Below, piece by piece: positions 16,999 through 52,815 of a DNA stretch of 64,000 nucleotides. The first letter of the stretch is position 1, and each line of letters starts with the position of its first letter. Both the position numbers and the translations under genes were made by a program. Under the pieces are notes generated by a model. That model was not told the DNA's origin and did not search any database. It was given only the letters and a program-made list of their open reading frames with translations. This stretch comes from Obrimoposthia wandeli. Taxonomy: Eukaryota. The DNA lies in contig CDROCS010000253.1 of the NCBI GenBank assembly GCA_977020255.1, positions 1,178,001 to 1,242,000 of the forward strand. Direction: 5' to 3'.

Positions 16999-17262
16999 TA
17001 CCAATCGGACTAATGAACTGATCACTTAGCGAGAATTAAAAGGCTTAGAAGCAAGGCATTGATTGAAGAGAATGGTTATTCCCTTGTCAAAATCAATAAC
17101 GCCGCATGTACGCCTTTTAAACTCGCCCTTTGGGAACTCGTTAGCAAACTGATAACATCACAAAATGAATGAAATATAGAATAACTATGTTTAACTCATT
17201 TTGTTTGTTCTAAGCTCGCTAACGTAGTTCTAAGTTGGTCAGTTAATTAATCCGTTTGGTAT
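16999..17262 (+). mobile_element. ERIC-like MITE, subfamily A (~264 bp)
   Basis: Imperfect ~33-bp TIRs (TACCAATCGGACTAATGAACTGATCACTTAG / CTAAGTTGGTCAGTTAATTAATCCGTTTGGTA). Shares core GCAAGGCATTGATTGAAGAGAAT-GTTATT...AAATCAATAAC with copies at 21494, 33100 and 52501. Confidence 0.85.
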
Positions 17263-17265
17263 AAT
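17257..17265 (+). promoter_or_regulatory. Extended -10 box (TGnTATAAT) formed at the MITE right end, upstream of ftsY
   Basis: TGGTATAAT, 18 bp before the ftsY GTG start. Confidence 0.5.
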
Positions 17266-17283
17266 ATATTTAGGTAGCTAAAA

Positions 17284-18654
17284 GTGTCGAAGAAAAAAGG
17301 TATGTTGTCTTGGTTAGGCTTTGGCAAAAAAGAAAAGCAACCAAGCACTGAAGAAAATAACAATGAAGCTCAGTCCGCCACTGAGCATGAACCAGCGACG
17401 GTAGCAGAGCCGGTTGAACAACTTGAGCAAATAGTTGAGTCAGTCGTCGAACACTCAACAGCAGAAACTAAAGCAGCAGTAACCGTTGAACCTGCAATTA
17501 CTGACGCCGCAACTGCAGACAGTTCTCAACGTGTTGAAGCTGAATTGACTAGTGATGTTGCTAGTGAAGAGCGACCAGAGGCAAAATTATTAGCCGAAAT
17601 GGCAGCTGTTGAGCAAGAATCAACTGATGATATTGTAGCAGCGTTAGCGCCAGAAGATGTAACGCCAACACCAGACGATATGGCTACAGAGCCTAAGCCT
17701 GAAGTCGACGAAGTTGTTGAAGTTAAAGCTGAAAGCAAGCTTGGTTTCTTTGCCCGTTTAAAACAGGGGTTAAGTAAAACAAGACAAAACTTAGGTGGCG
17801 GTTTAATTGACCTGTTTCGTGGTAAACAAATAGATGATGATTTATTTGAAGAGTTAGAAACGCATTTGCTCTTAGCGGATGTTGGTGTTGAAACCACCAT
17901 GAAAATTATCGATTCATTAACGAAAAGTGCTAACCGTAAGCAGCTAAAAGATGCCTCTGCTTTATATGACTTGCTTAAAATTGAATTGAAGAAAATTATT
18001 GCAGAGGTGACTCAGCCGTTAGTTATTCCTGAGGGGGAAGGGCCTTTTGTTATACTTATGGTTGGCGTTAATGGTGTGGGTAAAACCACGACCATTGGTA
18101 AGTTAGCTAAGCAATTTCAAGCCGAGGGTAAATCGGTAATGTTAGCAGCAGGCGATACTTTTAGAGCGGCTGCGGTTGAGCAATTACAAGTTTGGGGTGA
18201 CCGTAATAACATTCCTGTTATCGCTCAGCATACCGGTGCTGATAGTGCTTCGGTTATTTTTGATGCTATCAGTGCTGCAAAAGCACGTAAGGTTGATGTC
18301 ATTATTGCTGACACAGCAGGACGTTTGCAAAATAAAGCCCACTTGATGGAAGAATTGAAAAAAGTTGTGCGGGTAATGAAAAAATTAGACGTTAATGCGC
18401 CTCATGAAGTGATGCTAACGCTTGATGCTGGCACAGGTCAAAATGCTTTAAGTCAAACCAAGCTGTTCGACGAAGCTGTTGGACTAACGGGTTTAACGAT
18501 TACTAAGCTAGATGGTACCGCCAAAGGTGGTGTTATTTTTGCTGTGGCAGATAAGCATAGTATTCCTATTCGCTATTTAGGCGTTGGTGAAGGTATCGAT
18601 GATTTAAGACCCTTTAATGGTGATGATTTTATTGAAGCGCTTTTTAGTAAATAA
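17284..18654 (+). CDS. ftsY: Signal recognition particle receptor FtsY
   Basis: Acidic N-terminal A domain, GVNGVGKTTTIGKLA, DTFRAAA, DTAGR, TKLDGTAKGG. Confidence 0.98.
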   Translation: MSKKKGMLSWLGFGKKEKQPSTEENNNEAQSATEHEPATVAEPVEQLEQIVESVVEHSTAETKAAVTVEPAITDAATADSSQRVEAELTSDVASEERPEAKLLAEMAAVEQESTDDIVAALAPEDVTPTPDDMATEPKPEVDEVVEVKAESKLGFFARLKQGLSKTRQNLGGGLIDLFRGKQIDDDLFEELETHLLLADVGVETTMKIIDSLTKSANRKQLKDASALYDLLKIELKKIIAEVTQPLVIPEGEGPFVILMVGVNGVGKTTTIGKLAKQFQAEGKSVMLAAGDTFRAAAVEQLQVWGDRNNIPVIAQHTGADSASVIFDAISAAKARKVDVIIADTAGRLQNKAHLMEELKKVVRVMKKLDVNAPHEVMLTLDAGTGQNALSQTKLFDEAVGLTGLTITKLDGTAKGGVIFAVADKHSIPIRYLGVGEGIDDLRPFNGDDFIEALFSK

Positions 18655-18719
18655 AGATGAGAAAAGCAGGGTAATCGTGCTAAGTTAGCCTGCTTATTCG
18701 TACAAAACATTAAAGTAAT

Positions 18720-19418
18720 ATGATTGATTTCAATAAGGTAAATAAAACCTATCCAGGTGGTTTTCTGGCATTAAAACAAGTAAGTTTTAGCCTTAAAAGC
18801 GGTGAAATGGCTTTTTTAACTGGCCATTCAGGAGCAGGTAAAAGTACTTTGTTAAAATTAATCTCGTTAATGGAAAAACCCAGCTCCGGCAGTATTCAAG
18901 TAAATCACACCGAACTCGCTGATATTCAGTATAAACAGGTGCCTTATGTACGCCGTGGTATTGGCATGATTTTTCAAAGTCATAATTTACTTAAAGACCG
19001 CACCGTTTTTGATAATGTCGCCTTACCGTTAATTATCGAGGGTGTTAGTCACAGTGAAATTAAAAAGCGTGTTGCGACGGCCTTAGATAAAGTGCATTTA
19101 AGTGCTAAGTTGAAGTGTTATCCCCACATGCTTTCTGGTGGTGAGCAACAACGCGTTGGTATCGCTCGCGCTATTGTTAATAAACCCCCTATTTTACTTG
19201 CCGACGAGCCTACCGGAAATTTAGATCCCAAGTTATCGTTAGATATTATTCGTTTGTTTGAAGAGTTTAATGCCGCTGGAGTCACCGTACTTATTGCTAC
19301 TCATGATCTCGGTTTAATTGCGCGGATGAAATACCGCACACTGACGCTGAAAGAGGGCTCCATGATTAATGATGGTATCGTTGACGGCTTACAAGCGCAG
19401 GGAACAACTGATGAATAA
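18720..19418 (+). CDS. ftsE: Cell division ATP-binding protein FtsE
   Basis: [43 protein letters not shown]; synteny. Confidence 0.97.
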
Positions 19419-20385
19419 TATTCATAGTAGTGGTTTAAAAGCACGTTCAAGCTTATTGGCTCGGCTGTTAACCTTACCCATTCGACACGTTCAACAAGCG
19501 GTGGGTAGTTTAGGTGATTTATGGCGCACGCCTTTTACCACCGTGATGACGATTTTTGTTTTAGGTATCAGTTTGGCATTGCCCGCAACCTTACATCTTT
19601 TTGTTAAAAACGCCGAACAAGTAGGTGAACAGTGGGATAGTGCCTCGCAAATCACCTTATTTCTAAAATTATCAACCAGTGAGAAGAGCGCACAAAACCT
19701 AATAAAGCGTATTAGTCTTTATAATGATGTTGCAGAAGTGCGCTACATTTCAGCTAAACAAGCCTTAAAAGAATTTAAAATATTATCCGGTTTTGGTCAG
19801 TCACTTGAATACTTAGATAAAAACCCATTACCAGCGACATTATTGGTAACACCAACGCAACGAGCTAGCCAAGCCCAAGCGGCGAACGCCTTATTAGAAA
19901 AACTAAGCAAAGAGCGTGAAGTTGAACAAGGTAAGCTTGATTTGGAATGGTTAACGCGTTTAGAGGCAATGGCCCGCTTAATTGAAGATATAGTGCTCGG
20001 TGTCGCCTTATTATTGTGCCTGTCGGTGGTGCTAATTGTTGGTAATACTATTCGATTAGCTATTTTAAATGAAAAAGATGCTATCGCTATTATGAAATTG
20101 GTTGGCGCAACAGATAGCTTTATCCAGAGACCTTTTTTATATTCAGGTATTTGGTACGGTATTTTCGGCGGTATACTGTCTTGTATTGCGGTGACATTAC
20201 TAGCTTGGTATTTAGGCTACGCTATTAGTGATTTAAGTGAGCTTTACCAAAGTAACTTTCAATTGCAGGGATTATCCGGCAGTGAAGCATTAATGCTGAT
20301 CGCTTTTGCCATTGTGCTTGCCTTAATTGGGAGTTATATCTCGGTAAGTCAGCATATTAAAGCGATTGAACCTAATGCGGATTGA
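19411..20385 (+). CDS. ftsX: Cell division permease FtsX
   Basis: GISLALP, NPLPA, GNTIRLAI...I.IMKLVGAT..FI.RPFLY.G. Likely start is ATG 19411, overlapping the ftsE end. Confidence 0.95.
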   Translation: MNNIHSSGLKARSSLLARLLTLPIRHVQQAVGSLGDLWRTPFTTVMTIFVLGISLALPATLHLFVKNAEQVGEQWDSASQITLFLKLSTSEKSAQNLIKRISLYNDVAEVRYISAKQALKEFKILSGFGQSLEYLDKNPLPATLLVTPTQRASQAQAANALLEKLSKEREVEQGKLDLEWLTRLEAMARLIEDIVLGVALLLCLSVVLIVGNTIRLAILNEKDAIAIMKLVGATDSFIQRPFLYSGIWYGIFGGILSCIAVTLLAWYLGYAISDLSELYQSNFQLQGLSGSEALMLIAFAIVLALIGSYISVSQHIKAIEPNAD

Positions 20386-20625
20386 TATATGCGTTACCAA
20401 GCAATAGGTAGAATTTCCATGGTAAAGTAGAATAGGTATAACTGACTGTTTATTGTTGATAATTCATTAAATTTACAAATAGTCACATTTAATTCACAAA
20501 AAAATGGAAAGATCGCCTTGTGCCTCCCTTTCTATTAAGCTAATGTTCAGGTCCCCGCTATCGCAAATAGTGTCGATTTATGTTATCATCGCGGGCGAAT
20601 TCAAAGAGAGAAGGAGAGAGTTTTT

Positions 20626-21483
20626 ATGAGTCAAACAATGCAACTTACCTTACCAAAGAGTGGTAGTATCGAAGCATATATGCAATCCGCGTACAGCATT
20701 CCTATGCTAACCGCAGAAAAGGAGCATGATCTGGCTACTCGCCTCTACAATGAAAATGATTTACAAGCGGCGCAAGAGTTAATTATGTCGCACTTACGTT
20801 TTGTTATTCATGTTGCTAAAGGCTATTCTGGTTATGGTTTACCACATGCTGATCTAGTGCAAGAAGGCAACGTGGGTTTAATGAAAGCGGTTAAACGTTT
20901 TAATCCTGAAGTCGGTGTACGTTTAGTCTCCTTTGCAGTGCATTGGATCAAAGCAGAAATTCATGAATTTGTGCTTAAAAACTGGCGCATTGTAAAAGTT
21001 GCCACAACGAAAGCGCAACGTAAATTGTTTTTTAACCTACGTAAAAATAAAAAACGTTTAGGCTGGTTCAGCACTGAAGAAGTAAATACAGTAGCGGAAA
21101 GCCTTGGCGTAACCACGAAAGATGTTATGGAAATGGAATCTCGTATGAGTAGTCATGACCAAGCATTTGAATTATCAAAAGACGATGATGATAACCTTGG
21201 TGCCAGTAATTTTTCACCCGCCCAATACCTTCAAGATAAACAATCAGATTTAGCGGTTGAAGTTGAAAACGATAATTGGGACAACCATGCTAATAAACGT
21301 TTATCAACCGCACTAGTAACGCTTGATGAACGCAGCCAAGATATTATAAAAACACGCTGGTTAACCGAAGATAAAACAACGTTACAAGAGCTAGCTAATA
21401 AATACCAGATATCAGCCGAACGTGTAAGGCAGTTAGAAAAAAATGCGTTATCAAAATTAAAAAACACTATGGTTTTTGATTAA
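20626..21483 (+). CDS. rpoH: RNA polymerase sigma-32 factor
   Basis: [17 protein letters not shown], RpoH box [10 protein letters not shown], downstream of ftsYEX. Confidence 0.98.
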
Positions 21484-21493
21484 CGTTCAATAA

Positions 21494-21760
21494 TATACCC
21501 AAGCGACATGAAGATGCAGGTTTCAGCTGGAATTAGAAACGCCTTTAGGCAAGGCATTGATTGAAGAGAATAGTTATTCTATTGTCGAAATCAATAACGT
21601 AGCATAAAGCGTTTCTAAACCAGCCCTATGGGGACCCCTGAGCAGTTTATGCTCTTCGTTGCCTCCTTTTTTAAGGGAATAACCCTTAATAAAAGGAGGC
21701 GCCTTGATCATAAATCGCTCAGTGGTCCTGAAACACGCAGCTTCAAGTGGCTTGGGTATA
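21494..21760 (+). mobile_element. ERIC-like MITE, copy B (267 bp)
   Basis: TIRs TATACCCAAGCGACATGAAG / CTTCAAGTGGCTTGGGTATA, shared core, multiple internal hairpins. Confidence 0.9.
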
Positions 21761-21790
21761 TATCTTGTGTAAATAAACCGACTTAATGTC

Positions 21791-22060
21791 TAATGCCTGT
21801 CAGTTAACCGCTGACGGGCATTTTTTTTCTGCATACCGTTTAGATCTTACCTTAACTATTCTCGGATAACTTCTTTCTCGCTTTTCTGGCAATACAAATG
21901 CTGCGTCTATAAAGTAATCTATTAACTAGCCTAGGGGGTCTCTCTGGCGTTAGACTTCAAAATCAGCTTTTTTGATCGCTTTATTTGATTGAAAGATGGT
22001 TATCCATAAAACAAATATTGTTTTAGCTCATAATTTACCAATTCATTTCTCGCTTTTACT
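21791..22060 (-). mobile_element. Relic right end of an IS4-family insertion sequence (transposase C-terminus plus terminal inverted repeat)
   Basis: Minus strand 21925-21800 reads LIDYFIDAAFVLPEKRERSYPRIVKVRSKRYAEKKCPSAVN* (IS4 LP-R-R-YPR-VK motif). End sequence TAATGCCTGTCAGTTAA at 21791 resembles the IS4 IR TAATGCCGATCAGTTAAG. The upstream part is degenerate and its boundary approximate. Confidence 0.75.
21794..21828 (+). terminator. Hairpin plus T8, probable rpoH terminator (inside the IS4 relic end)
   Basis: TGCCTGTCAG-ttaaccg-CTGACGGGCA followed by TTTTTTTT. Confidence 0.7.
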
Positions 22061-22160
22061 CGTTTCCCAGTATTATTTAGGTATATAATGTTGGTACATA
22101 AAGCATAGACTAACGCATAGCTTAGTCATGTGAGCATCAAATATCAGGAGTTAAGTTATT

Positions 22161-22418
22161 ATGGGTGGAATCGGAATTTGGCAACTAGTTATTGTTGCCG
22201 TGATCGTAGTGTTATTATTCGGAACTAAAAAGTTACGTAACTTAGGTGGTGATTTAGGTTCGGCTGTCAAAGGTTTTAAAAGTGCTATAGGTGAAGAAAA
22301 AGAACAAAAAAATAGCGCAGAAAAAACCTCCGATACTTTAGCTGACAGTTCAAAAAACGCTACAGAAGAAGTGATCAAAACAAAAGAAAGCAAGACCAAA
22401 GAAACTGATCAGGCCTAA
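22161..22418 (+). CDS. tatA: Twin-arginine translocase subunit TatA
   Basis: [40 protein letters not shown]. Confidence 0.97.
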
Positions 22419-22421
22419 TTT

Positions 22422-22910
22422 ATGTTTGATGTTGGCTTTTGGGAGTTAATTCTTATTGCAATCATGGGCTTAGTTATTTTAGGCCCTGAACGCTTACCGG
22501 TAGCAATCCGCACTCTTCGTGGCTGGATATCCGGCGCTCGAAAATTTAGTGATACGGTCAAGTCTGAGCTAACAGAAGAATTACGCATACATGAGTTACA
22601 TGCTAACTTAAAAAAAGCAGAACAAAGTAACTTACAAGACTTAAGTCCTGAAGTTGCCGAATCATTGAAATCACTGCAAGAAGCCGCCGCTGCTGTCACT
22701 GAGCCTTTCAAAAAAGTGGACAGACAGCCCTTAGAATCAATGATCGCTTCTTCACTAGCTGCAGCTCCGACTGTTAAAGTGGATCCGGAGAACGTGCAAG
22801 ATACTGAAGAGCCAAAGATATCGAATGTTCCAACAGAAAATGTAGATAAATCAGTGGATCCAGAAATTGATAAATCAGTGAATCTAGAAAGTGATAAACT
22901 TCAGCCATGA
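22422..22910 (+). CDS. tatB: Twin-arginine translocase subunit TatB
   Basis: MFDVGFWELILIAIMGLVILGPERLP. Confidence 0.97.
   Translation: MFDVGFWELILIAIMGLVILGPERLPVAIRTLRGWISGARKFSDTVKSELTEELRIHELHANLKKAEQSNLQDLSPEVAESLKSLQEAAAAVTEPFKKVDRQPLESMIASSLAAAPTVKVDPENVQDTEEPKISNVPTENVDKSVDPEIDKSVNLESDKLQP
22845..22898 (+). repeat. 24-bp in-frame tandem repeat in the tatB tail
   Basis: GATAAATCAGTGGATCCAGAAATT / GATAAATCAGTGAATCTAGAAAGT / GATAAA (DKSVDPEI-DKSVNLES-DK). Confidence 0.75.
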
Positions 22911-23671
22911 GTATTCCTACAGCACAAGTTGCAAGCCTTTTTGATCATCTTTTAGAGTTACGTAATCGTTTATTACGATCAGTTCTCGGGGTGTTAATTG
23001 TTTTTTGTTGCTTAGTCTACTTTGCACAAGATATTTATCAATATGTGGCGCAGCCATTATTAGCTACCATGCCAGAAGGGTCACAAATGATAGCGACCGA
23101 TGTTGCTTCACCATTTTTTGCCCCCTTTAAATTAACTTTAGTGTTATCCCTTTTTATTGCTATGCCATTTGTCTTATATCAAGTGTGGTCATTTGTTGCT
23201 CCTGGTTTATACCGTAATGAAAAGCGTATGATTGCTCCGTTGATGTTTGGCTCTACACTGTTGTTTTATAGTGGCATTGCTTTTGCGTACTTTCTTGTTT
23301 TTCCTGTGGTCTTTGCCTTTTTTACTTCAGTAGCACCAGAAGGCGTTGTTATTGCAACAGATATCAGTAGTTATCTAGATTTTATCCTAAAATTATTTTT
23401 TGCTTTTGGTGCCGCATTTGAAATACCTATTGCTATTATTTTAATGTGTTGGACAGGTATGACAACACCTGATAGTTTAAGAGAAAAGCGACCTTATGTT
23501 GTAGTAGGCGCATTCGTTATTGGTATGTTGTTGACACCACCTGATATTATTTCGCAAACGATGTTGGCTGTGCCAATGCTATTTTTATTTGAAGTAGGTA
23601 TTATTATTGCCTCGTTTTATCATAAAGAAGATGAAGACGAGTCAAATGATGTAAAGGAAAATGAAAAATGA
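22907..23671 (+). CDS. tatC: Twin-arginine translocase subunit TatC
   Basis: HLLELRNRL, SPFFAPFKL, FVAPGLY..E, FGAAFEIP, LTPPDIISQ. Confidence 0.97.
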   Translation: MSIPTAQVASLFDHLLELRNRLLRSVLGVLIVFCCLVYFAQDIYQYVAQPLLATMPEGSQMIATDVASPFFAPFKLTLVLSLFIAMPFVLYQVWSFVAPGLYRNEKRMIAPLMFGSTLLFYSGIAFAYFLVFPVVFAFFTSVAPEGVVIATDISSYLDFILKLFFAFGAAFEIPIAIILMCWTGMTTPDSLREKRPYVVVGAFVIGMLLTPPDIISQTMLAVPMLFLFEVGIIIASFYHKEDEDESNDVKENEK

Positions 23672-24159
23672 AAAATATAAGCAAACTCGCTTATTACCTT
23701 GTAGTTACTAGTTTATTCTTAACACAGACAGTGTTAGCTAAAGAAAATGATCTTTCGGATAAAATTCAAGGCTGTATGAAAATAAGTCAAGATGTGGCAA
23801 GGCTTACGTGTTTTGACCAGCTGACAAATAATTACAGTGGCACAAGCGTAGAACCAGAAATAACAGACTTGACAGCGAAACAAGTTGATTCTTTTTCTAA
23901 AGAACAAGTTAAAAAAACAAGTGAAGAAGTCGCTACAGAAATAACTACCATTACGCTAACGATTAGTGAATTAACTAAAACGATGCGTGGACAATGGAAA
24001 GTGACTTTTACAAATGGCCAAAAATGGCAACAAAAAGATACTGTTACATTAAGATTGAAAAAGGGAAACAAAGTAATACTAACCAAAGGGGCGCTTAGCT
24101 CCGTGTTTTTGCAAAAAGAAAATACTAATAAGCGCATTAAAGTAAAAAGGCTTAAATAG
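23668..24159 (+). CDS. Secreted hypothetical protein within the tat operon
   Basis: Signal peptide ending VLA-K, C..I.....RL.CFD motif, C-terminal F.NGQ.WQQ / I.KGAL.S beta-rich domain. ATGA overlap with tatC. Confidence 0.8.
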   Translation: MKNISKLAYYLVVTSLFLTQTVLAKENDLSDKIQGCMKISQDVARLTCFDQLTNNYSGTSVEPEITDLTAKQVDSFSKEQVKKTSEEVATEITTITLTISELTKTMRGQWKVTFTNGQKWQQKDTVTLRLKKGNKVILTKGALSSVFLQKENTNKRIKVKRLK

Positions 24160-24171
24160 AGCGAGATTACT

Positions 24172-24999
24172 TTGAATAAAGGCACTTTGATAGATATTGG
24201 CGTCAACTTAACCAATAAACGTTTTGAGAAAGATCGCGAAGAGGTCATTCGCCGGGCTCAAAAGGCTAATTTGAATGGCGTGTTGATTACTGGCACGAGT
24301 GTTGAAGAAAGCCAGCAGGCGTTGGCTTTGTGTCAGCAATATCAAAAAAGTTTCCCTAACTTTTTATATAGCACTGCCGGTGTGCATCCCCACGATGCAG
24401 ATCATGTGACTGCTGACTACTTAGAACAACTCAAGTTATTAGCGATACAAGAGCCAGTTAAGGCCATTGGTGAGTGTGGTTTAGATTTCAATCGAAATTT
24501 TTCAGCGCCAGCTCAACAACAAAAAGTGTTTAGCGAACAAGTTGCTTTAGCTTCAGAACTACAAATGCCACTTTTTTTGCACCAACGAGATGCATTTGAC
24601 CCATGGTTCACTATATTATCTCCCTATTTTGGTAAAGTTCCTGCTATGGTCGCACATTGTTTTACTGGCTCAAAAGCAGAGCTTACTCAATGTCTATCAG
24701 CGGATATGTATATAGGTATAACGGGTTGGTTATGTGATGAGCGTAGAGGGCAATCCTTGCGCGATATAGTCGGCCTAATTCCTTTAAATCGTTTACTCAT
24801 TGAGACTGATGCTCCGTATTTATCACCCCGAACAATTCGACCAAAACCTAAGAGTAGCCGTAATGAACCAAGCTACTTACCTTTTATAGTTAAAGAAATT
24901 GCGAGTATTACAGGTATTGACCAAGAGGAGATAGCTTGGCAAACTAGCCGTAATGCCGAAAAGGTATTTAATTTTCCAGCAATAAAAGAATCATCCTAA
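24172..24999 (+). CDS. tatD: TatD family 3'-5' nuclease
   Basis: LIDIGVNL, TAGVHPH, AIGECGLDFNRNFS, FLHQRDA, HCFTG, LIETDAPYL. Confidence 0.95.
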   Translation: MNKGTLIDIGVNLTNKRFEKDREEVIRRAQKANLNGVLITGTSVEESQQALALCQQYQKSFPNFLYSTAGVHPHDADHVTADYLEQLKLLAIQEPVKAIGECGLDFNRNFSAPAQQQKVFSEQVALASELQMPLFLHQRDAFDPWFTILSPYFGKVPAMVAHCFTGSKAELTQCLSADMYIGITGWLCDERRGQSLRDIVGLIPLNRLLIETDAPYLSPRTIRPKPKSSRNEPSYLPFIVKEIASITGIDQEEIAWQTSRNAEKVFNFPAIKESS

Positions 25000-25881: not shown

Positions 25882-25897
25882 TATTTTTACAGAATAA

Positions 25898-26959
<1,062 letters not shown>

Positions 26960-27044: not shown

Positions 27045-27069
27045 GTTGACAAATCTTAAACTACTGACA

Positions 27070-31807: not shown

Positions 31808-33067
31808 ATGAACCTTACCGAACTGAAAGAAAAATCAATTAATGAATTGGTTGAGCTTGCTGCGACCATGAAGCTTGAAAACCTTGCTAGAACACGTAAA
31901 CAAGACATAATTTTTGCTATTTTAAAAGCACATGCTGAAGGCGATAATGATATTTTCGGCGGCGGTGTTTTAGAGATTTTACAAGATGGTTTTGGCTTCT
32001 TACGCTCAGCAGACTCTTCATACTTAGCAGGCCCAGATGATATTTATGTATCACCAAGCCAAATTCGCCGCTTTAGTATGCGCACGGGTGATACCATCCA
32101 AGGTAAAATTCGTTCTCCGAAAAAAGGTGAACGTTACTTTGCCTTATTAAAAGTGACTGAAGTTAACTTTGACCGACCTGAAAACACTCGCAATAAAATT
32201 TTATTTGAAAACCTAACACCTATTCATCCAACAGATCGTTTTTCGTTGGCGCGTGGTAATGGTTCAACAGAAGATATTACCGCACGTATTTTAGATTTAG
32301 CCTCGCCAATTGGTAAAGGACAACGTGGTTTAATCGTTGCTCCACCAAAAGCCGGTAAAACATTATTATTACAAAACATTGCCCAAAGTATTGCGCACAA
32401 TAATCCAGACGCAGAATTAATGGTATTGTTGATTGATGAACGTCCAGAAGAAGTTACTGAAATGCAACGCCTGGTTAAAGGTGAAGTTATTGCTTCAACG
32501 TTCGATGAACCAGCAAGTCGCCATGTACAAGTGGCTGAAATGGTAATCGAAAAAGCAAAACGTTTAGTTGAACACAAAAAAGACGTGGTTATTTTACTTG
32601 ATTCAATTACCCGTTTAGCACGTGCTTATAACACGGTAATTCCATCGTCAGGTAAGATCTTGACTGGTGGTGTTGATGCGAATGCTTTGCATCGTCCAAA
32701 GCGTTTCTTTGGTGCAGCACGTAACATTGAAGAAGGTGGTAGTTTAACTATTATCGCTACAGCACTAGTAGAAACCGGTTCTAAAATGGATGAAGTTATC
32801 TATGAAGAATTTAAAGGTACAGGTAATATGGAATTACACCTGTCACGTAAAATTTCTGAAAAACGCGTTTTCCCTGCTATTAACATTAACCGTAGTGGTA
32901 CACGTCGTGAAGAGCTTATTACTAAGCCAGACGAATTACAAAAAATGTGGATCTTGCGTAAAATCGTTCATGAAATGGATGAAATAGGCGCGATTGAATT
33001 TCTTATTGATAAGTTAGCAATGACTAAAACCAATGATGAATTTTTTGATTCAATGAAACGTAAGTAA
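31808..33067 (+). CDS. rho: Transcription termination factor Rho
   Basis: [32 protein letters not shown], 419 aa. Confidence 0.99.
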
Positions 33068-33099
33068 TCCAAAGTCTACGTAAGTCCGTATAGCAATAC

Positions 33100-33365
33100 T
33101 ATACCCGCTCCACTTGAAGATGCAGGGTTCAGCTGGAATTATAAACGCCTTTAGGCAAGGCATTGATTGAAGAGAATAGTTATTCTATTGTCGAAATCAA
33201 TAACGCAGTGTAAAGCGTTTATAAACCAGCCCTTTGGGGAAAACTGAGCAAAACATACTCGTCGTTACATTTGTTGCTAAGGGGATAACCATTAACAAAA
33301 AATGTGCCTTGATTATGATTCGCTCAGGTTTCCTGAAACGAGCATCTTCAAGTGGAACGGGTATA
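33100..33365 (+). mobile_element. ERIC-like MITE, copy C (266 bp)
   Basis: TIRs TATACCCGCTCCACTTGAAGATGC / GCATCTTCAAGTGGAACGGGTATA, shared core. Confidence 0.9.
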
Positions 33366-33400
33366 TATCGACAGACTATTTTGCCGATACTTTATTAAAC

Positions 33401-33427
33401 AAAGCCAGTCACTTCGACTGGCTTTTT
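33401..33427 (+). terminator. Rho-independent terminator downstream of rho and the MITE
   Basis: AAAGCCAGTC-acttc-GACTGGCTTTTT. Confidence 0.75.
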
Positions 33428-35041: not shown

Positions 35042-35761
35042 ATGAAAACAGTTAGTTGTCAAATACAGTCGTTATCATCGTTAACGCCTCATGTTTATAA
35101 AGTACTATTAAAACCCAATGAAAAAGTTGATTTTATTGCTGGCCAATATTTAAACTTTATTCTAAGTGATGAGGATAAACGTCCATTTTCAATTGCTAGC
35201 TCACCAAACAGTGAAATAATTGAATTACAAATAGGTGCCTTTGTTGCCGATAGTTACCCTATGCAGGTAATTGAGCGTATTAAAGCTAGTCATGCGAGTG
35301 GTGAGGCAGTAACCATTGAAATACCTGCAGGCAATGCGCAATTACGTACAGAGAGTGCACGACCATTATTGTTACTTGCTGGTGGTACTGGTTTTTCATA
35401 TATAAAATCAATGTTTGAGTATTTAGCAGAGCAAAATTCGCAGCGTCATATCATGGTTTATTGGGGATTACGTGAAGAAAGTGCCATGTATGAGCTCGAA
35501 AAAACCATTGCTACTATTGCTAAGCTTGCTCACGCTAACTTTATTCCAGTGATTGAAAACATTGATGAAAACGCACCGAAACCATGGCAAGGTAAAACGG
35601 GCTTAGTTCACCAAGCCGCCATGCATGATATTGTAAGTTTTGAACCCTACGATATTTATTTAGCAGGTCGTTTTGATATGGTTGGTGCTATTCGTAGTGA
35701 CTTTGTTGAGCATGGCGCGTTGTTAGAGCATATGTACGCAGATGCATTTGCCTTTATTTAA
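35042..35761 (+). CDS. fre: NAD(P)H-flavin reductase
   Basis: F.AGQYL, RPFSIAS, LLAGGTGFSY, IYLAGRFDM, DAFAFI; follows ubiD. Confidence 0.95.
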   Translation: MKTVSCQIQSLSSLTPHVYKVLLKPNEKVDFIAGQYLNFILSDEDKRPFSIASSPNSEIIELQIGAFVADSYPMQVIERIKASHASGEAVTIEIPAGNAQLRTESARPLLLLAGGTGFSYIKSMFEYLAEQNSQRHIMVYWGLREESAMYELEKTIATIAKLAHANFIPVIENIDENAPKPWQGKTGLVHQAAMHDIVSFEPYDIYLAGRFDMVGAIRSDFVEHGALLEHMYADAFAFI

Positions 35762-35779
35762 TACCAAACGGATTAATTA
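35761..35779. repeat. Solo terminal inverted repeat of the subfamily-A MITE at the fre stop codon
   Basis: ATACCAAACGGATTAATTA, identical over 19 nt to the reverse complement of 17244-17262. Confidence 0.7.
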
Positions 35780-43605: not shown

Positions 43606-43629
43606 TAACTTTATTTTAAGGAAATTATT

Positions 43630-43785: not shown

Positions 43786-43800
43786 TTAATTTTGTTTCTC

Positions 43801-43829
43801 AAAAAAACCCGGTTTTTCCGGGTTTTTTT
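43801..43829 (+). terminator. Rho-independent terminator of rpmB-rpmG
   Basis: AAAAAAACCCGG-ttttt-CCGGGTTTTTTT. Confidence 0.85.
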
Positions 43830-43896
43830 ATGCCTGAAAAACGGTATATATCTGGGTGTTATACGCGCTATTCAAGACAAAGTTCAGTATGATATA

Positions 43897-43943
43897 TATA
43901 CCCAAGCCTCTTGAAACCTGCATCTTCATGTGGCTTGGGTATA
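43897..43943 (-). mobile_element. 47-bp minimal MITE (two fused ends)
   Basis: TATACCCAAGCCTCTTGAA + ACCTGCATCTTCATGTGGCTTGGGTATA; matches both termini of copy B in reverse orientation. Confidence 0.85.
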
Positions 43944-43967
43944 TGATTAGTTTATTGGAAAATTTAT

Positions 43968-44468: not shown

Positions 44469-44498
44469 CGGTTACAATTGCACTTACAAGAAGAGATT

Positions 44499-45793
<1,295 letters not shown>

Positions 45794-46026
45794 TTATTGT
45801 ATTTTTTAACTGCTGTTAAGTGTCATTGTAATGGGATAAGTAACTTAGTGACAAGTATTTATGCTTTGAATTTTGCCGCTAAGCCATGAATAATAACAAA
45901 AATGAATAATTTATCACAAAAAAAAGCAAAAAAGCTTAAAGTATTTACTCAAAACACTTTATATATACTGAATTTTGATAGTATTATTGTGTTAGTTTTA
46001 ATTAAATCAAATTAAGAAGTAGCTGC

Positions 46027-46689
46027 ATGAAGACCCGCGATAAAATAATCCAAGCCAGTATTGAATTATTTAATGAGCAAGGAGAGCGTAATGTTACCAC
46101 CAATCATATCGCTGCTCACTTAGCCATTAGCCCTGGTAATCTGTATTATCATTTCCGTAATAAAGAAGATATTATTTTATCTATTTATGAAGAGTATGCA
46201 CGTAGCCTACTATTAGATACATTGCCAAAGGTTTCTGCGGGAGTAAAACCGTTAGATTCACTGGTTTTGTATATGGATTCTGTTTTTCAAACCACAATGA
46301 AATTTCGCTTCTTCTATAGTAATCTGCCTGTGCTATTGGATAAAAATCCAATTTTGCGGGAAAAGTATGTTGAAGTGCAACAGTCTATCTCAGAGCGTGT
46401 TAGTCAGCTTCTTATTTCATTAAGAGCTGCTGATTATATTGACTTTAATGACGATGAATTGGCTGATATTGTCAGTATTTTACGTCTTATTAATACCTTT
46501 TGGGTCAGTTTTCACCAAACTCAGACCATAGTTAATGAAGTCAACGATTCAGTATTTTATCAAGGAGTACTTAAAATATTAGTTATCTTACGCCCGTATA
46601 CTAAAGCACATGCAATTAGCGAGCTTAATCACGCTCGTGATGTGTATCAGCAAAGATATCGTGAAGAGGCAGAAATAGCTTGTAGTTAA
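46027..46689 (+). CDS. TetR/AcrR family transcriptional regulator
   Basis: LFNEQGERNVTTNHIAAHLAISPGNLYYHFRNKEDI HTH. Confidence 0.92.
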   Translation: MKTRDKIIQASIELFNEQGERNVTTNHIAAHLAISPGNLYYHFRNKEDIILSIYEEYARSLLLDTLPKVSAGVKPLDSLVLYMDSVFQTTMKFRFFYSNLPVLLDKNPILREKYVEVQQSISERVSQLLISLRAADYIDFNDDELADIVSILRLINTFWVSFHQTQTIVNEVNDSVFYQGVLKILVILRPYTKAHAISELNHARDVYQQRYREEAEIACS

Positions 46690-47705
46690 GCTGTAATTTT
46701 GAATTGAAAGTTATCTGGTTTTTCATAACCTTGGCTGACATTGAAGTAAAAATTTCCAATTCGTTGTGCTCGCTGTTGTACCTCATTTGACTGCACAGGT
46801 TTTATGCTTTGATTCGAGGCTAGTTTTTGATTTGATGTACTAGAGGTAATCGCTTCTTGTGCGGATAATGTTTGATTGATAAAGGCATCAAACTCATTAC
46901 TTTTATCAGCGTGATTATCATCAGTTAAGGTGGCATTAGTTTTTATATTCAGCTTATTATTTGATTGAGTTACCTCATCATTTTTCAGTGCTAATAGCTC
47001 TGATTGTGCCGCGAGAATATTCTGTGCCGCACTAGCGGCCACCCTAGTATCTTGTGTTGATGGACTTGCTGGTGCCAATGCTGCCGCGTGTACTTTTTGC
47101 ATCTTAACTATTGTTGCTTGCGGATCACCAGCGACGCTGCTTAAATCGACAGCAACCTCTCCACCCACTGCATATTTTTTTCCATCAGGTCCAATTTCAA
47201 AAGTATATGAAGGTGAGCCTGTGGCAGCACCCCCTGCCGTTGCGTGGGCTAACTCATGCGTTCTTACTTCTTTATCTCTTTGCTGCAACTGAATGATTAT
47301 TTTTTCGTCAGCGCGAATTTGCTTGCTACTTTCATCAGCTTTATCTTTCTCTGATGTGCTGCTGTTAGTGTTCGAGTGTTGGTCTTCTTGATTTTTCTGA
47401 GAGCTCTGCTCGTCTTGCTGAGACTTACCTTGTTGATCGCCTTGTTGGTTTTCGTGCTCAGAAATAGAGCTAGCAGCATGCTCTGCTTGTTTTCTTAAGT
47501 TAGCAAAATCGACTTGTTCGTTTACTTGAGCCGGTGTACGAGCTCGATCTTTATCTGAAGCGACACCTTTTTCAGCTGCGGATGGGTGGGTAGCGGTAAC
47601 TTGGGTAATAACTTCTCGTTGATGATTATCACGACGCAAGCCTTCCGTAGGCGGATTGACTACGGTGGCTAGGGGTAAGTTTGCTGTATGCGGAGTAATA
47701 TTCAT
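46686..47705 (-). CDS. SprA-related / CJM1_0395-like putative metalloprotease
   Basis: L..RDKEVRTHELAH (HExxH), GPDGKKYAVGGEV..D, AALAPASPS.QD..VAA; Q/S/N-rich linkers. Confidence 0.8.
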   Translation of the reverse strand: MNITPHTANLPLATVVNPPTEGLRRDNHQREVITQVTATHPSAAEKGVASDKDRARTPAQVNEQVDFANLRKQAEHAASSISEHENQQGDQQGKSQQDEQSSQKNQEDQHSNTNSSTSEKDKADESSKQIRADEKIIIQLQQRDKEVRTHELAHATAGGAATGSPSYTFEIGPDGKKYAVGGEVAVDLSSVAGDPQATIVKMQKVHAAALAPASPSTQDTRVAASAAQNILAAQSELLALKNDEVTQSNNKLNIKTNATLTDDNHADKSNEFDAFINQTLSAQEAITSSTSNQKLASNQSIKPVQSNEVQQRAQRIGNFYFNVSQGYEKPDNFQFKITA

Positions 47706-47717
47706 GATGAAATATTA

Positions 47718-48026
47718 TTAGACGGTTACATCAAGTAGGGTGCCAAGTGAATCATCAGCACTTCTAATGACTTCTGTTGAAGCTTTTGCTTGAAATTCAG
47801 CCACTTTCAAGTTGACTATCGCTTGGTTTAAATCAGGCAATTCTAAATGGCTACTTGGATTACTTACCTCAGTGTTCACCTCACCATTACTGGCCGGGCT
47901 CTTTTGTGGCTCAGTAGTCAACGTTGTACTCGCGACAATATCAGCAGCAGCTTGATCAGCTGTTGCTCTCGCATTTTGTAAACCTTGTAAACCTGAATTC
48001 ATTGCAGATGGTATTTCCACAGGCAA
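47718..48026 (-). CDS. Small protein resembling flagellar rod/hook terminal helices
   Basis: SAMNSGLQGLQ.A N-terminus and IVNLKVAE.QAKA...VIR.AD..LGTLLDV C-terminus. Likely start GTG 48020 (AGAGGA RBS). Confidence 0.7.
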   Translation of the reverse strand: MPVEIPSAMNSGLQGLQNARATADQAAADIVASTTLTTEPQKSPASNGEVNTEVSNPSSHLELPDLNQAIVNLKVAEFQAKASTEVIRSADDSLGTLLDVTV

Positions 48027-48125
48027 TCCTCTATTACTAGTAAGCTACGTTGGTTAATTATTAATCTAAACGACGAAGAAGTAAAGGTGAATTGACATCA
48101 TAACAAAGCAAGCCCGTTTATTAAG

Positions 48126-48947
48126 TTAGCTAAAGTGTGACTCTAACCAAGTGACTAACACCTGATAAAAATCATCAAGGTGAGAAATAAATGGTGCATG
48201 GGAAGCATTTTCAAATAAGTGCGGGTCACTATTTGGCGCTAAATGATTAACTTGTTCGATCACTGCTTTGGGCACCAAACTATCGTTATGCCCGTATAAG
48301 CGCAAAAAGGGTTGTTTGATAGTTGATAAATACTGGCGTAGATCACAGTGACTTAATAATGCTAGTGAATCAGCTAAAGTTTGTTGGCTAGGAAGAGCAT
48401 GTGCCATAACTAACTGGGTGATCAGTTTTAAGTCCTGTCGGATATGAGGGCTGCCCATTGCTTGAATTTTTAGGAAACCACTAATTGTTTTGGCGGTATC
48501 TTTGGTTAATTGGCTATGAAAGCTATCGAGAACATTTTCCTTTATGCCTGGCCAACTGTTTATCGGTTGTTCGACAAAATATGGGCTACTGGCAACGGTA
48601 ATGAGTGCCAATACTTTTTCTGGATATTTGAGAGACATTTCTGTTGCCAGTAAGCCACCTAGTGACCAACCAAGGTAAATCGCCGGCTGGTCAATTACTT
48701 GTTCAATATGATGACAAATATTGACTAAAGAGTAAGGGCTTATATCAACGGCACTATTGATTCCAAAGCCGGGTAAATCAATGGTGATGAGTTGGTAGTT
48801 ATTCTCGTTGTTAGCATGGAATAATGCTAATAGTGGTTGCCAAATACCTGAATTTAACCCCCAACCATGCAGGAGAACAATAGGGATTACATTTTTTTTA
48901 AGGGTGTTAGTAGGGGGAAAGGTGGAAAATGTTAAGCTTTTTGCCAT
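48126..48947 (-). CDS. bioH: Pimeloyl-ACP methyl ester carboxylesterase BioH
   Basis: LLHGWGLNS, DLPGFG, GWSLGG, D.LVP, SHAPFISH; divergent from comF. Confidence 0.93.
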   Translation of the reverse strand: MAKSLTFSTFPPTNTLKKNVIPIVLLHGWGLNSGIWQPLLALFHANNENNYQLITIDLPGFGINSAVDISPYSLVNICHHIEQVIDQPAIYLGWSLGGLLATEMSLKYPEKVLALITVASSPYFVEQPINSWPGIKENVLDSFHSQLTKDTAKTISGFLKIQAMGSPHIRQDLKLITQLVMAHALPSQQTLADSLALLSHCDLRQYLSTIKQPFLRLYGHNDSLVPKAVIEQVNHLAPNSDPHLFENASHAPFISHLDDFYQVLVTWLESHFS

Positions 48948-49050
48948 GCTTATTACTGCACTATGATAATCAAAGCGTTAGTTTATATCATATTGGGCGG
49001 CAGCAAAGGTAATTTAAAGGTGGTTTAAAGGTAAGTAAAAGGTAAGCAAT

Positions 49051-49848
49051 ATGGTATGGAAGCTAAATTTAAAGGTGTTTAAGAGCTATTACACGAATGC
49101 CCTCAGGAGGATTAGCAGCTGTGATTTGTGCGGTGCAAACGTCAGCAATAGTTACTTACTTGGTTATTCGCTACCACAAGCATTACTCTGTCAATGCTGT
49201 GTAAACGACTTGCCTTATTTTAACCAAAACATAATAGCAGGTAATTTACTTAGTTGGCCTGCGGTTCACCGTGCTTTACCAAATATTCATTTTGAACAGT
49301 TGTTTGCTTTATCACCCTACATTTACCCCTTTAATAAATGGTTAGCCCAAATGAAATATTTAGGGCGTTTTGAGTTAGCAAATTTATTTAGTGCCTTACT
49401 CTGTGCTCAGTGGCAAGCAATGTTAATGAACAAAGAGGCAATGCCTAATGAAATACTACCTATTGATTTAGTGATATCTGTGCCCTTGCATGTTAATAAA
49501 TGGCAGGTTCGTGGTTATAATCAAGCGCACCTCATTGCAAGGTCTTTTGCCGGGAAATTGTCATTACGCTATGATGCTCACTTAGTGGAGAGAGTAAAAA
49601 ATAATGATAGCCAGATGGGAAAAACGGGCAGTCAACGACGAAAGAATTTAGCTAATGCTTTTGCTTTACAAGGAAAGCTAGCAAGTCATATTAAACATGT
49701 ATTGATTGTTGATGATGTGGTCACCACGGGCACCACCGCTAGTGAAATAAGCAAATTATTAAAACAAGTGGGCGTTGAAACCGTTACCTTAGTAACGGTT
49801 TGCTTAACTTTACCTAACGCGAATAATTTTGGGACCGTACTTGGCTAA
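49051..49848 (+). CDS. comF: ComF/GntX family phosphoribosyltransferase-like DNA utilization protein
   Basis: N-terminal CxxC..CxxC, VPLH...RGYNQA, R..NLANAF, VLIVDDVVTTGTT. Confidence 0.9.
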   Translation: MVWKLNLKVFKSYYTNALRRISSCDLCGANVSNSYLLGYSLPQALLCQCCVNDLPYFNQNIIAGNLLSWPAVHRALPNIHFEQLFALSPYIYPFNKWLAQMKYLGRFELANLFSALLCAQWQAMLMNKEAMPNEILPIDLVISVPLHVNKWQVRGYNQAHLIARSFAGKLSLRYDAHLVERVKNNDSQMGKTGSQRRKNLANAFALQGKLASHIKHVLIVDDVVTTGTTASEISKLLKQVGVETVTLVTVCLTLPNANNFGTVLG

Positions 49849-49860
49849 CCGTTAGAAAAT

Positions 49861-52473
49861 CTATTTATACGGCGCAGAAAAAGCTTTGCTGAAGAATAAA
49901 CTGTTGGCGAGTAATTTTGCACTACCATGCCAGTAACCTCTAAACGCGAGCACTTCTGTTGTTGCTATTACTCGGCCTTTGCCGACGTTGTGAGCAACAA
50001 TAGCGGCATTATGTGCTAATCGATTAACTAAATTTTTGTCAGTATAGCCACTTAGCAGTGGTGCTGGCGTATATTTCGCTAACGTAACAAATGGCTGTTG
50101 AGGATGCTCCATGATCAAATTACTATTACGAAATAATGGCAGTAAACTTTGTTGATAACCATAAGCTAGCGGATGGCTAGTATCTAATTCTACTTGGAAA
50201 ATAGCGCCAGCAATACGTTTACGACTAGCGAGGCTTTCTTTCGCTTGATAGCTGAGATTTTCATCATCAAATAATTGGTTTATCTGCTCTTTAGTGACAA
50301 ACCTGGCACGTAAAATGTCTTGCTCTGCTAACCAAAGAGCAGCGCGCTTTTGGCCGATAATGACACCACCTTGTTCAACCCATGCTTTTAATTGCTTAGC
50401 GGTATGCTCAGTAAAGTGCTTGTAATTACCATCAACGAGAATAATATGGCTATAACTTGATAAATCGACTTGTCTTAATTGACTATGGTCGATAATAGAC
50501 AGTGGGATATTTAGCGTTTCATCAAGATAGAAGCGCACTTCACCTGCTTCGTATTGCGATATACCCGTGCCACCTAATAAAAGAGCTTTAACCTTACCCA
50601 TCGGTTTTAGTGAGCTACTACCAATATCAACGCCTTTCATTGTTAAACCGCTACTAATTCTGTTTAATTCAATACCGGTATTATTACTGGCAGCAACTAA
50701 GCTCTCTTGCCAGTTTTTGTTTTGTTGAATGCCTGCTGGTATCACTATGCTGCCCACTTTAAAGTGCTTAGTTTTGCCATTGATTACACTGGTAAAAGGT
50801 TTAGTTGCTACTCTTGCTTTGATATTACTATTTAGCAGATTATTGAGTAATTTAGGTGCTAAAAAGTGATGCCATTCAAAAATATAACCGTAAGCAGATT
50901 TACTACTACTGTTTTGTGCGAAGGTTGTTGGCATGGTCCAAGCTTGTTTCGCCAATTTTAATTTTCGGGTACGGTTTATTTGGACGGATTCAATATTCAT
51001 AGCCAAAGGCATTGTCCAGCCGGAGACATCATAAAAAGTATTATCTTTAAAGTCAGTTTGTTGATTAAACAACGCTTGAATTAGTCGAAATTGAGGTTGC
51101 GCAAGAGGTATGTAATAGCTATTATTTTTTTGATAATTTTTATCTTTAAATTCAAAATCAGCGACCAGCGGATAAGCCTTAATTTTATGCTGGGCTAGTT
51201 TTGACAACAAAGCATTGAGGCGAAAATTATCGATACTTTCGTGTAATAAATAACCTTCAAAATCTTCTTTACTTGCGAGTTTATTGCTTTGTTGATAAAA
51301 ATCACTGCGGTATTGCTTCAGCTGCTTTCTATTTTCCCAGGCACCATTGATGGTAGAAAGTGAGGTGGTTACATGATTCTCTATACTAAATTCTAAAGTC
51401 AGTAAGCCATTGCTTGTTTCTTGCTGCATACCCCTAGCACTGGCTTGCTCAAATAATATGCCAATGCTGCCATTAATATCGGGGTAGGTTGAACCCTTAC
51501 CGTAGTAAAAATCATCGAAATTCTCTTCGCTATAATAAAGACGTTTTTGTTTATCTAATGCTGAGGCATGAAATTTTGCCAAGGTTGTTGTTAATTCGAC
51601 ATTTCTTTTCGGGGTCAGTGGATGAGTGCGACTTTGTATGCCAGGTTGAAAAAAATAACTGCTGTTATGACCCATTTCATGAAAATCGCCGACAACATGG
51701 GGTTGATATTGGTGGAAGTATTTTAATCGATGTTGGCTTTCTTGTTGAGAGAGCAATAACCAGTCGCGGTTTAAGTCAAACCAAAAATGATTGGTTCTGC
51801 CAGTAATCCAATTTTGGTGGTGCTCGATATGATTGGCGTCGCTATTATCAGTTGAATTGCGATAGGTACTAACCCAATTAACAAATCTGTCCATCCCGTC
51901 AGGGTTGATGCTCGGTTCTAATACGATCACGGTATTGGCAAGTAACTCAGCCACTTTTTCATCCGTATTAGCCGCTAAATAATAGGCAAGTATCATGGCC
52001 GCATAAGCGCCACTTATTTCATCGCCATGCACGCTATAACCTAACCAAATAACTAAGGGTGCGCTGTCAGCCTTTTGGTTATCAAGATGCTTTTTCTTTA
52101 GTGAAGTCTTTAGAGAAGCCTTTACAGAGGCGTTTGGAGAAAGAATGTCACGGTCACTGAGAATACTCGACAAATTTGCTAAATTTTTAGGACTAGAAAT
52201 GGTAATCAGTAGCTGTTCTCGTTGCTGAGGTGTTCTCCCCATAGAGGTGATATTTATACGATCGGAATCCTTGGCCAGCTGATAAAAGTAGTTTTTTAGC
52301 TGATCATGTCTAATATGGCGTTGGCCAATTTCAAATCCTAAGCTATTACTTGGTAAGGAAATGTTGTTATTGAATTTACTACCCTCAGGCAAGTAATCTT
52401 GTACGGGCATGGCAATAAGCCCAGTAGAGTAGAGTAGAGTAATGGATAAAATTATAATTCGTAGCAGTAACAT
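49861..52473 (-). CDS. Secreted M14 family zinc carboxypeptidase with C-terminal GATase-like domain
   Basis: Signal peptide, SVHGDE (HxxE), NPDG, GRTNH..FDLNRDW, DFHEM; 870 aa. Confidence 0.9.
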   Translation of the reverse strand: MLLLRIIILSITLLYSTGLIAMPVQDYLPEGSKFNNNISLPSNSLGFEIGQRHIRHDQLKNYFYQLAKDSDRINITSMGRTPQQREQLLITISSPKNLANLSSILSDRDILSPNASVKASLKTSLKKKHLDNQKADSAPLVIWLGYSVHGDEISGAYAAMILAYYLAANTDEKVAELLANTVIVLEPSINPDGMDRFVNWVSTYRNSTDNSDANHIEHHQNWITGRTNHFWFDLNRDWLLLSQQESQHRLKYFHQYQPHVVGDFHEMGHNSSYFFQPGIQSRTHPLTPKRNVELTTTLAKFHASALDKQKRLYYSEENFDDFYYGKGSTYPDINGSIGILFEQASARGMQQETSNGLLTLEFSIENHVTTSLSTINGAWENRKQLKQYRSDFYQQSNKLASKEDFEGYLLHESIDNFRLNALLSKLAQHKIKAYPLVADFEFKDKNYQKNNSYYIPLAQPQFRLIQALFNQQTDFKDNTFYDVSGWTMPLAMNIESVQINRTRKLKLAKQAWTMPTTFAQNSSSKSAYGYIFEWHHFLAPKLLNNLLNSNIKARVATKPFTSVINGKTKHFKVGSIVIPAGIQQNKNWQESLVAASNNTGIELNRISSGLTMKGVDIGSSSLKPMGKVKALLLGGTGISQYEAGEVRFYLDETLNIPLSIIDHSQLRQVDLSSYSHIILVDGNYKHFTEHTAKQLKAWVEQGGVIIGQKRAALWLAEQDILRARFVTKEQINQLFDDENLSYQAKESLASRKRIAGAIFQVELDTSHPLAYGYQQSLLPLFRNSNLIMEHPQQPFVTLAKYTPAPLLSGYTDKNLVNRLAHNAAIVAHNVGKGRVIATTEVLAFRGYWHGSAKLLANSLFFSKAFSAPYK

Positions 52474-52500
52474 CTAGAGAGCCTCAGTATTTGACTAGGA

Positions 52501-52815
52501 TATACCCGTTCCACTTGAATATGCATGATTCAGCTGGAATTAGAAACGCTTTTAGGCAAGGCATTGATTGAAGAGAATAGTTATTCTATTGTCTAAATCA
52601 ATAACGCAGCATAAAGCGTTTCTAAACCAGCCCCTTGGGGAAGGCTGAGCAAATCATACTCTGCGTTACCTTTCTTTTTAAGGGCGCTACATGGATGTCG
52701 CTTTTTAGAGAATGCAGGAGCATATTCTCCTGAATAACCCTTAATAAAAAAATGTGCCTTGATTATGAATCGCTCAGACTTCCTGAAACGAGCATCTTCA
52801 AGTGGAGCGGGTATA
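52501..52815 (+). mobile_element. ERIC-like MITE, copy D (315 bp, with a 48-bp nested insert)
   Basis: TIRs TATACCCGTTCCACTTGAA / TTCAAGTGGAGCGGGTATA, shared core; extra 52685-52732 relative to copy B. Confidence 0.9.

Follow-up and report, generated by a model that had tools for sequence, protein, structure and literature searches.

Double-hairpin MITEs with IS630-type ends and a shared core in a Colwellia-type genome within the Obrimoposthia wandeli assembly

Insertion sequences (IS) of the IS630 family canonically duplicate the dinucleotide TA at their target. [quoted passage not shown] (PMC6267812); the link between ERIC and IS630 is therefore already published and is not in itself new. 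Here we analysed a family of ~265-bp elements in a stretch of 64,000 nucleotides (the window: positions 1,178,001 to 1,242,000, forward strand, of contig CDROCS010000253.1, hereafter C253) from the Obrimoposthia wandeli assembly GCA_977020255.1. An initial annotation of this window had described a TA-bounded MITE family with four full copies and several derivatives, and had proposed an enlarged, modular relative of ERIC that is abundant genome-wide and mobilised in trans. From the comparisons below, it is very probable that the elements are MITEs derived from, and moved by, IS630-family (Tc1/mariner-type DDE) transposases.

The sequence C253:1178001-1242000 has a G+C content of 38% and belongs to a bacterial contig of at least 4.6 Mb, which lies within a eukaryote assembly of 1.35 Gb and 6,912 contigs. 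Genes flanking the copies share 93% identity with Colwellia demingiae and 88-89% with Colwellia sp. 12G3 and C. piezophila, so that the host, judged by this identity, is a Colwellia-type gammaproteobacterium whose genome, that of a symbiont or of a contaminant, was carried into the eukaryote assembly. The four full copies all lie on the plus strand. Copy 1 (type B, TACCAAT...ATTGGTA-type ends) occupies 16999-17261, or 16996-17264 with its 3-bp target duplications (TAA at 16996-16998 and 17262-17264). Copy 2 (type A2, TACCCAAG ends) is located at 21496-21758 (21494-21760 with the TA duplications) and copy 3 (type A, TACCCG ends) at 33102-33363 (33100-33365 with the TA duplications); copy 4, also type A with TACCCG ends, covers 52503-52813 (52501-52815 with the TA flanks). 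In a repeat search of the window, the terminal inverted repeats of the copies at 21494 and 33100 were 33-34 nt long and 85-88% complementary. The four copies, and the derivatives at 10468, 35761 and 43897, are all where the initial annotation had placed them, and every copy is located between open reading frames (ORFs), as it had also reported.

Past mobility is evident from precise empty sites in sister species, the check that had been proposed for this family. Copy 1 is absent at the orthologous site in Colwellia sp. 12G3 (G002) and in C. demingiae (G004); the G002 site is an exact empty site with a single TAA, reading CTG-TAA-TATATTT where the window has TAA, element and TAA. G004 lacks copy 2 and has one TA in its place, and G002, G004 and G005 all lack copy 4, each with a single TA and a spacer of equal length. 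The spacer holding copy 3 is too diverged to be aligned across related Colwellia, and other species hold different family members there. At the equivalent site of copy 3 in G001 (L194, ~2170-2190) we observed a footprint-like joint of TATAC to GGGTATA. Because such older scars and different family members occur in the same spacers, these spacers appear to have been targeted repeatedly.

The flanks of the elements fall into two classes. Across all sampled loci, TA stood on either side of 66 of the 79 elements with TACCC ends, none of which had identical 3-mers as flanks, whereas identical flanking 3-mers were found for 42 of the 60 TACCAA-ended elements (24 TAA, 16 TTA, one TGA and one TAG). 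The family uses two different target duplications, TA for the TACCC type and 3 bp for the TACCAAT type; the term "TA-bounded" is therefore correct for copies 2, 3 and 4 and wrong for copy 1. The full-length IS with TACCAAT ends behave in the same way, with identical 3-bp flanks (TTA, TAA or TGA) in 17 of 20 copies (loci L280-L293, L213, L230, L207 and L222). A literature search, ISfinder not covered, returned no report of a 3-bp duplication in the IS630 family.

These IS were found with a fragment protein and the NCBIfam IS630 model, followed through 151-401 genomes of the same GTDB family. The full-length IS recovered are ~1.1 kb long and have three end classes. TACCAAT-ended IS are present in G098, G128, G151, G050 and other genomes; some carry two overlapping ORFs and one a fused 342-aa ORF, and both ORFs match NF033545 and together contain helix-turn-helix (HTH) and DDE_3 domains. 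Intact, TA-flanked IS of ~1.1 kb with TATACCCG ends occur in G025, G171 (two identical copies of 1,102 bp) and G381, the one in G025 coding for an intact 342-aa transposase with HTH_23, HTH_33 and DDE_3 domains. A TATACCCAAG-ended IS was found in G179 and a TATACTCG-ended IS in G289. The CCC-type and TACCAAT-type transposases share 26% identity. Long pairs of type A ends in the sampled loci were also considered as candidate IS and rejected, being adjacent MITEs around genes for LysR, MscS, a DEAD helicase and DUF1653.

The ends of the MITEs match the ends of these IS. Type B ends match those of the TACCAAT-type IS, and the ends of copy 2 resemble those of the IS in locus L266. Ends that match those of type A are present on the IS of G025, G171, G381 and G179. 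Over its last 42 nt, copy 3 has 88% identity to the end of a gene that carries the annotation "IS630 family transposase" on Vibrio anguillarum plasmid p292, and the search of the plasmid collection gave the same match on a Klebsiella plasmid. The p292 IS, 1,098 bp long and TA-flanked, has a right end overlapping the final codons of its transposase gene. With this right end, either terminus of the type A MITE agrees at 27 of 30 bases, vs. 21-23 of 30 with the left end. We concluded that the type A MITE is composed of two right-end-type termini of a p292-like IS, since both of its ends match the IS right end better than the left. The transposase gene with matching terminal repeats that the initial annotation had recommended looking for is thus present in related genomes and on an annotated Vibrio plasmid. 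Taken together, the elements have the matching terminal repeats, the TA duplication (TNA in the TACCAAT lineage) and the precise empty sites of an IS630-derived MITE.

Movement by a transposase supplied in trans is inferred, and several results weigh against it. In the window, tblastn with both transposase lineages gave nothing better than E = 0.13, in line with the earlier statement that no cognate transposase is encoded there. Two transposase queries against the whole of C253 detected no intact cognate gene, no CCC-type gene and one broken IS630 copy. The latter (L206, C253:3877217-3880534) is a decayed IS630 with a CACCAAT-type left end and split ORFs, its right part cut off by an IS66-like element that begins with an IS66-type small ORF. 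An intact homologue of 340 aa (54% identity) sits on a different contig, C5398, which may or may not come from the same bacterium. Among the five MITE-rich Colwellia-group genomes checked, four lack any match to the DDE_3 profile (PF13358); the matches in the remaining one are fragments, one of them between TATACCAAT...ATTGGTATA repeats. Conversely, the genomes with intact CCC-type IS (G025, G171 and G381) have no core-bearing MITEs. The IS left-end pattern, when searched in the assembly itself, gave as many matches for the control as for the real pattern.

The missing transposase could mean that the elements are fossils, which spread earlier, when an IS630 passed through, and which nothing in the genome moves now. 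We give this possibility somewhat less than an even chance. It agrees with the lone broken IS on C253, with the lack of DDE_3 in most of the MITE-rich genomes, and with the divergence of 4-10% that separates most copies in this genome. However, some of the genome's own copies are up to 98.9% identical to one another, so the activity of the family, as far as such identity can date it, is fairly recent; and the homologue on C5398 is intact. In addition, CCC-type transposase matches occur in 14 family genomes, and nine of these also hold the core shared by the elements (see below), compared with 104 of 401 (26%) overall, a comparison that ignores relatedness. The simplest reading of both sets of observations would be episodic mobilisation by incoming IS.

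The claim of genome-wide abundance was borne out. The near-invariant 23-mer of the core gave 176 matches in the assembly (with up to 3 mismatches) and the reversed control gave none; among the matches listed, most are on C253. Searches with whole elements scored more than 40 copies each for the TACCCG and TACCAA types. The same MITEs were also seen on the small contigs C6288, C4567, C2253 and others of the assembly. The core is present in the 104 genomes mentioned above at 1-163 copies each (control 0), and the named genera carrying it are Colwellia, Cognaticolwellia, Pseudocolwellia and Pseudoalteromonas. Of 194 elements, 190 lie outside long ORFs. Copies from different species can be 93-96% alike across their whole length. 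A search of the phage collection found nothing matching the element.

The single strands of types A and B are predicted to fold into a Y, with the terminal repeats as the base, the shared core as hairpin 1 and a type-specific hairpin 2 (predicted free energy -110 and -95 kcal/mol for types A and B, respectively; z ∼ -10). The core block of copy 3 is the 110 nt at 33143-33252 (plus strand), which hold the near-invariant 23-mer beginning GCAAGGCATTGATT; the repeat search of the window showed equivalent blocks in all other copies, at 17039-17148, 21537-21646 and 52544-52653. In the predicted fold hairpin 1 spans 33132-33230 and is mostly inside the core block. Between the type A and type B consensus sequences, identity is 85-95% over positions ~41-120 and 35-60% elsewhere, including hairpin 2 and the ends. 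This contrast exists only between subfamilies, because within each subfamily every position is ~90% conserved. A covariation count on the consensus fold of 187 distinct cores gave seven pairs with frequent double changes, six in the lower stem and one at the tip, the events not being independent; examples from the lower stem are GC 72/TA 61/AT 13 and AT 91/GC 66. The upper stem is invariant. A short GAATAAC/GATAAC-type motif (e.g., AGAATAACT and GGAATAACC) was noticed at both hairpin tips in opposite orientation (for instance at 33173-33187 and 33282-33292), and it is kept in hairpin 2 of types A and B despite their differing stems. Hairpin 2 may have arisen long ago by inverted duplication of hairpin 1; alternatively, the two tips may constitute a paired site.

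At least five end types from two transposase lineages carry the same core. Because these lineages share so little identity, we infer that the core passed from one MITE lineage to another, through exchange, recombination or capture, and was not inherited from a common IS. In the mechanism that we propose, two terminal repeats of IS right-end type enclose the two long hairpins, and the single strand would fold into the Y. Elements of the CCC type (TACCCG or TACCCAAG ends), their ends homologous to those of enterobacterial ERIC, insert at TA and duplicate it; those of the TACCAAT type insert at T-N-A and duplicate 3 bp, like their cognate IS. The same hairpin core of ~110 nt is found in both lineages and on two or more other end types in relatives, and a transposase supplied in trans would move the elements. 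Our guess is that the core probably aids the spread, for example by fold-back or DNA bending so that the ends meet. A bolder proposal is that the core is a portable functional module which was captured by unrelated MITE lineages and raised their success through IHF-type (integration host factor) bending or end-pairing fold-back and, separately, that the TACCAAT elements belong to a branch of IS630 with a 3-bp TNA duplication. This proposal is tentative and, in our opinion, rather doubtful as it stands.

The core could also be without function, if a few chimeric MITEs spread recently and the stems stayed paired by arm-to-arm repair or conversion in fold-back DNA. We regard this as a real possibility, though on balance we would not expect it to be correct. 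The even conservation within each subfamily (~90% throughout) agrees with it, and the likeness of whole elements between species suggests recent horizontal spread. On the other hand, at least five end types belonging to two distant transposase lineages have this core in common, and it is 85-90% identical between types where hairpin 2 and the ends retain 35-60%. No solo core was seen among the sampled loci, which also argues against a functionless core; for the same reason the core as an independently mobile unit was rejected.

A third explanation takes the core for the binding site of a DNA-bending host factor: IHF bound at the middle of the element would join the ends and raise transposition by any IS630 transposase. 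The bottom strand of the near-invariant 23-mer contains a perfect match to the IHF consensus WATCAANNNNTTR, here AATCAATGCCTTG, and no part of the element is more conserved than the one that holds this motif. The seven variants of the 23-mer that are frequent all spare the motif, since they fall on N positions, outside the motif, or on an allowed R form (∼p = 0.04). The orientation of the elements with respect to adjacent genes is unbiased, as would suit an action on DNA. HMGB1 assists the transposition of Sleeping Beauty and offers one precedent. Another comes from Correia elements, which carry an IHF site (PMC2229807). However, the significance of the variant pattern is weak, the WATCAA part of the motif coincides with the invariant upper stem so that structural constraint explains the same pattern, and the lower stem has compensatory changes, a sign of a fold rather than of a protein site. 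We therefore consider a host-factor site unlikely.

The core might instead be kept for a role in RNA, being co-transcribed in untranslated regions and altering mRNA stability or processing. Copy 2 lies between the stop codon of an rpoH-like ORF (20626-21483) and the terminator of that gene (stretch 21494-21835), and copy 3 between the stop codon of the ORF at 31808-33067 and its terminator (stretch 33100-33420), each terminator consisting of a hairpin plus a T-run. Because of this position, copies 2 and 3 should form part of mRNA 3' untranslated regions. Effects on mRNA stability or processing have been shown for Yersinia ERIC and Neisseria Correia elements, in work that PMC10969869 cites, and the low z-score of the fold and the covarying stem pairs would suit an RNA function. 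Contigs of marine metatranscriptomes give the MITE bins heavy coverage, whereas three of four runs left the single-copy stretch of ftsX empty; but these contigs sum many copies and organisms and for that reason cannot prove transcription. Downstream of genes, sense and antisense elements are about equally frequent (71:63), and such random orientation argues against a strand-specific RNA role; nor does the excess of elements between divergent genes (40) over those between convergent genes (14) fit it. Rfam gave no match in the window at the gathering threshold and none on 33050-33420 even at E up to 1. An RNA role is thus improbable as the reason for the conservation of the core. The remaining idea, that the elements are no transposons but a family of genes for structured non-coding RNA or of palindromes of the repetitive extragenic palindromic (REP)/RAYT type, has the strong predicted structure in its favour and is contradicted by the target duplications, the empty sites, the IS630 end matches and the lack of Rfam matches, which make it extremely improbable.

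Several smaller features of the window belong to the same family. Copy 4 has a nested insert of 48 nt (52684-52731) at the tip of hairpin 2, made of two small hairpins with UGGA and AGGA loops, and 26 copies of this module were counted in the sampled loci. The derivative at 10468-10521 (plus strand) is a right-half remnant in which a fragment of the linker after hairpin 1 is fused to a type A right end, the interior being deleted. At 35761-35779 a solo type B (TACCAA) terminal repeat adjoins the stop codon of the ORF at 35042-35761, and the repeat search found the solo end near 35761 to be 92% complementary to 17244-17268. The derivative at 43897-43943 is an ends-only mini-element of type A2, with 12 nt of the left and ~35 nt of the right end. 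A perfect extended -10 box, TGGTATAAT, is formed at 17257-17265 by the copy 1 right end, the TAA duplication and the T that follows, and the GTG start (17284) of an ftsY-like ORF comes 19 nt later; the orthologous MITE-free sites in G002 and G004 are without this box. Just upstream of copy 1, at 16974-16990, an end-like remnant TATACCAAAC is present in the three genomes compared. Apart from the MITEs, the minus-strand ORF at 63305-63925 contains a 111-nt direct repeat (63318-63428 and 63750-63860; 71% identity, 432 nt apart), which suggests an internal duplication of a protein segment.

One of the most abundant repeat families of cold-marine Alteromonadales now has parent transposons that are intact in relatives, and these support the view of ERIC-type repeats as IS630 derivatives. 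The occurrence of one hairpin core on the ends of transposase lineages with 26% identity may serve as a natural experiment on what makes a MITE successful apart from its ends. The 3-bp TNA duplication, if confirmed, would widen the known integration behaviour of IS630/Tc1-mariner elements. Because the elements occupy presumed 3' untranslated regions and promoters of core genes, namely the rpoH-like and ftsY-like ORFs, and break short-read assemblies, they are also relevant to annotators of Colwellia genomes.

How the family is related to ERIC itself was examined on an E. coli ERIC copy (L181:110-236) of 127 bp. Its ends are TATACTC...GAGTATA, so the TATACC ends that the initial annotation had assigned to ERIC need correction. 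Anchored on the terminal 30 nt, the right end of this ERIC agrees at 22 of 30 positions with the right end of the G025 IS, at 22 of 30 with a fifth Colwellia MITE end type (TATACTCATG), and at 19-20 of 30 with the type A ends. Shuffle tests of the ERIC end matches gave p-values from <5e-5 to ~1e-3 for types A, A2 and D; type B failed. The interior gave a different result: in 5,426 E. coli genomes, blastn with copy 3 as the query found no match at E up to 10, and the ERIC centre was detected in every one of them. On this evidence, kinship with ERIC is limited to the terminal ~30 nt and a shared IS630 parentage, the interiors being unrelated. For types A, A2 and D, the TATAC-type ends and the TA duplication are those of ERIC in the strict sense (type B has neither), whereas the unit of ~127 bp and the conserved central inverted repeat (ERIC1R/ERIC2 region) are absent. 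The description as an enlarged, modular ERIC relative therefore holds for the termini and the modularity, but does not extend to the interior or to the TACCAA copy, which belongs to a different IS630 lineage.

Among the described systems, RUP of Streptococcus pneumoniae with IS630-Spn1 resembles the Colwellia elements as the textbook example of an IS630-derived MITE with matching terminal repeats and a TA target (PMC2229807), but its host is Gram-positive, its length is 107 bp and it lacks a modular core. The Correia (NEMIS) elements found in Neisseria are likewise TA-flanked MITEs with long terminal repeats and size variants formed by an internal module; their long form has a central IHF site and their RNA hairpins are processed (PMC2229807, PMC10969869). 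Their sequence is unrelated to ours, and IHF in the Colwellia core is a motif match only. In Photorhabdus, MITEPlu5 and ISPlu3, ISPlu8 and ISPlu19 (PMC6267812) show the same relation between MITE and IS, the MITE ends matching a subset of IS630 with CCC beside the TA (TA followed by TACCC in the Colwellia elements); by its description, on which this comparison was made, MITEPlu5 is a 123-bp single hairpin without a core across end types. ERIC (also IRU, intergenic repeat unit, or MITEEc1) shares with the Colwellia elements the TATAC(Y)C...G(R)GTATA termini (identical at 19-22 of the 30 outermost bases), the TA duplication, the intergenic location, the strongly folded imperfect palindrome and a copy number of up to hundreds per genome. 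It differs in having 127 bp and its own conserved centre where the Colwellia elements have ~265 bp and two hairpins, and, unlike ERIC, one of the four window copies derives from another IS630 lineage with a 3-bp duplication. A literature search, again with ISfinder not covered, returned no publication that deals with this family of Colwellia or with its core or ends. We concluded that the family is known in kind, as an IS630-derived MITE of ERIC type, and new in form, with a double-hairpin architecture of 265 bp, a core common to different end types and a sister lineage that duplicates 3 bp.

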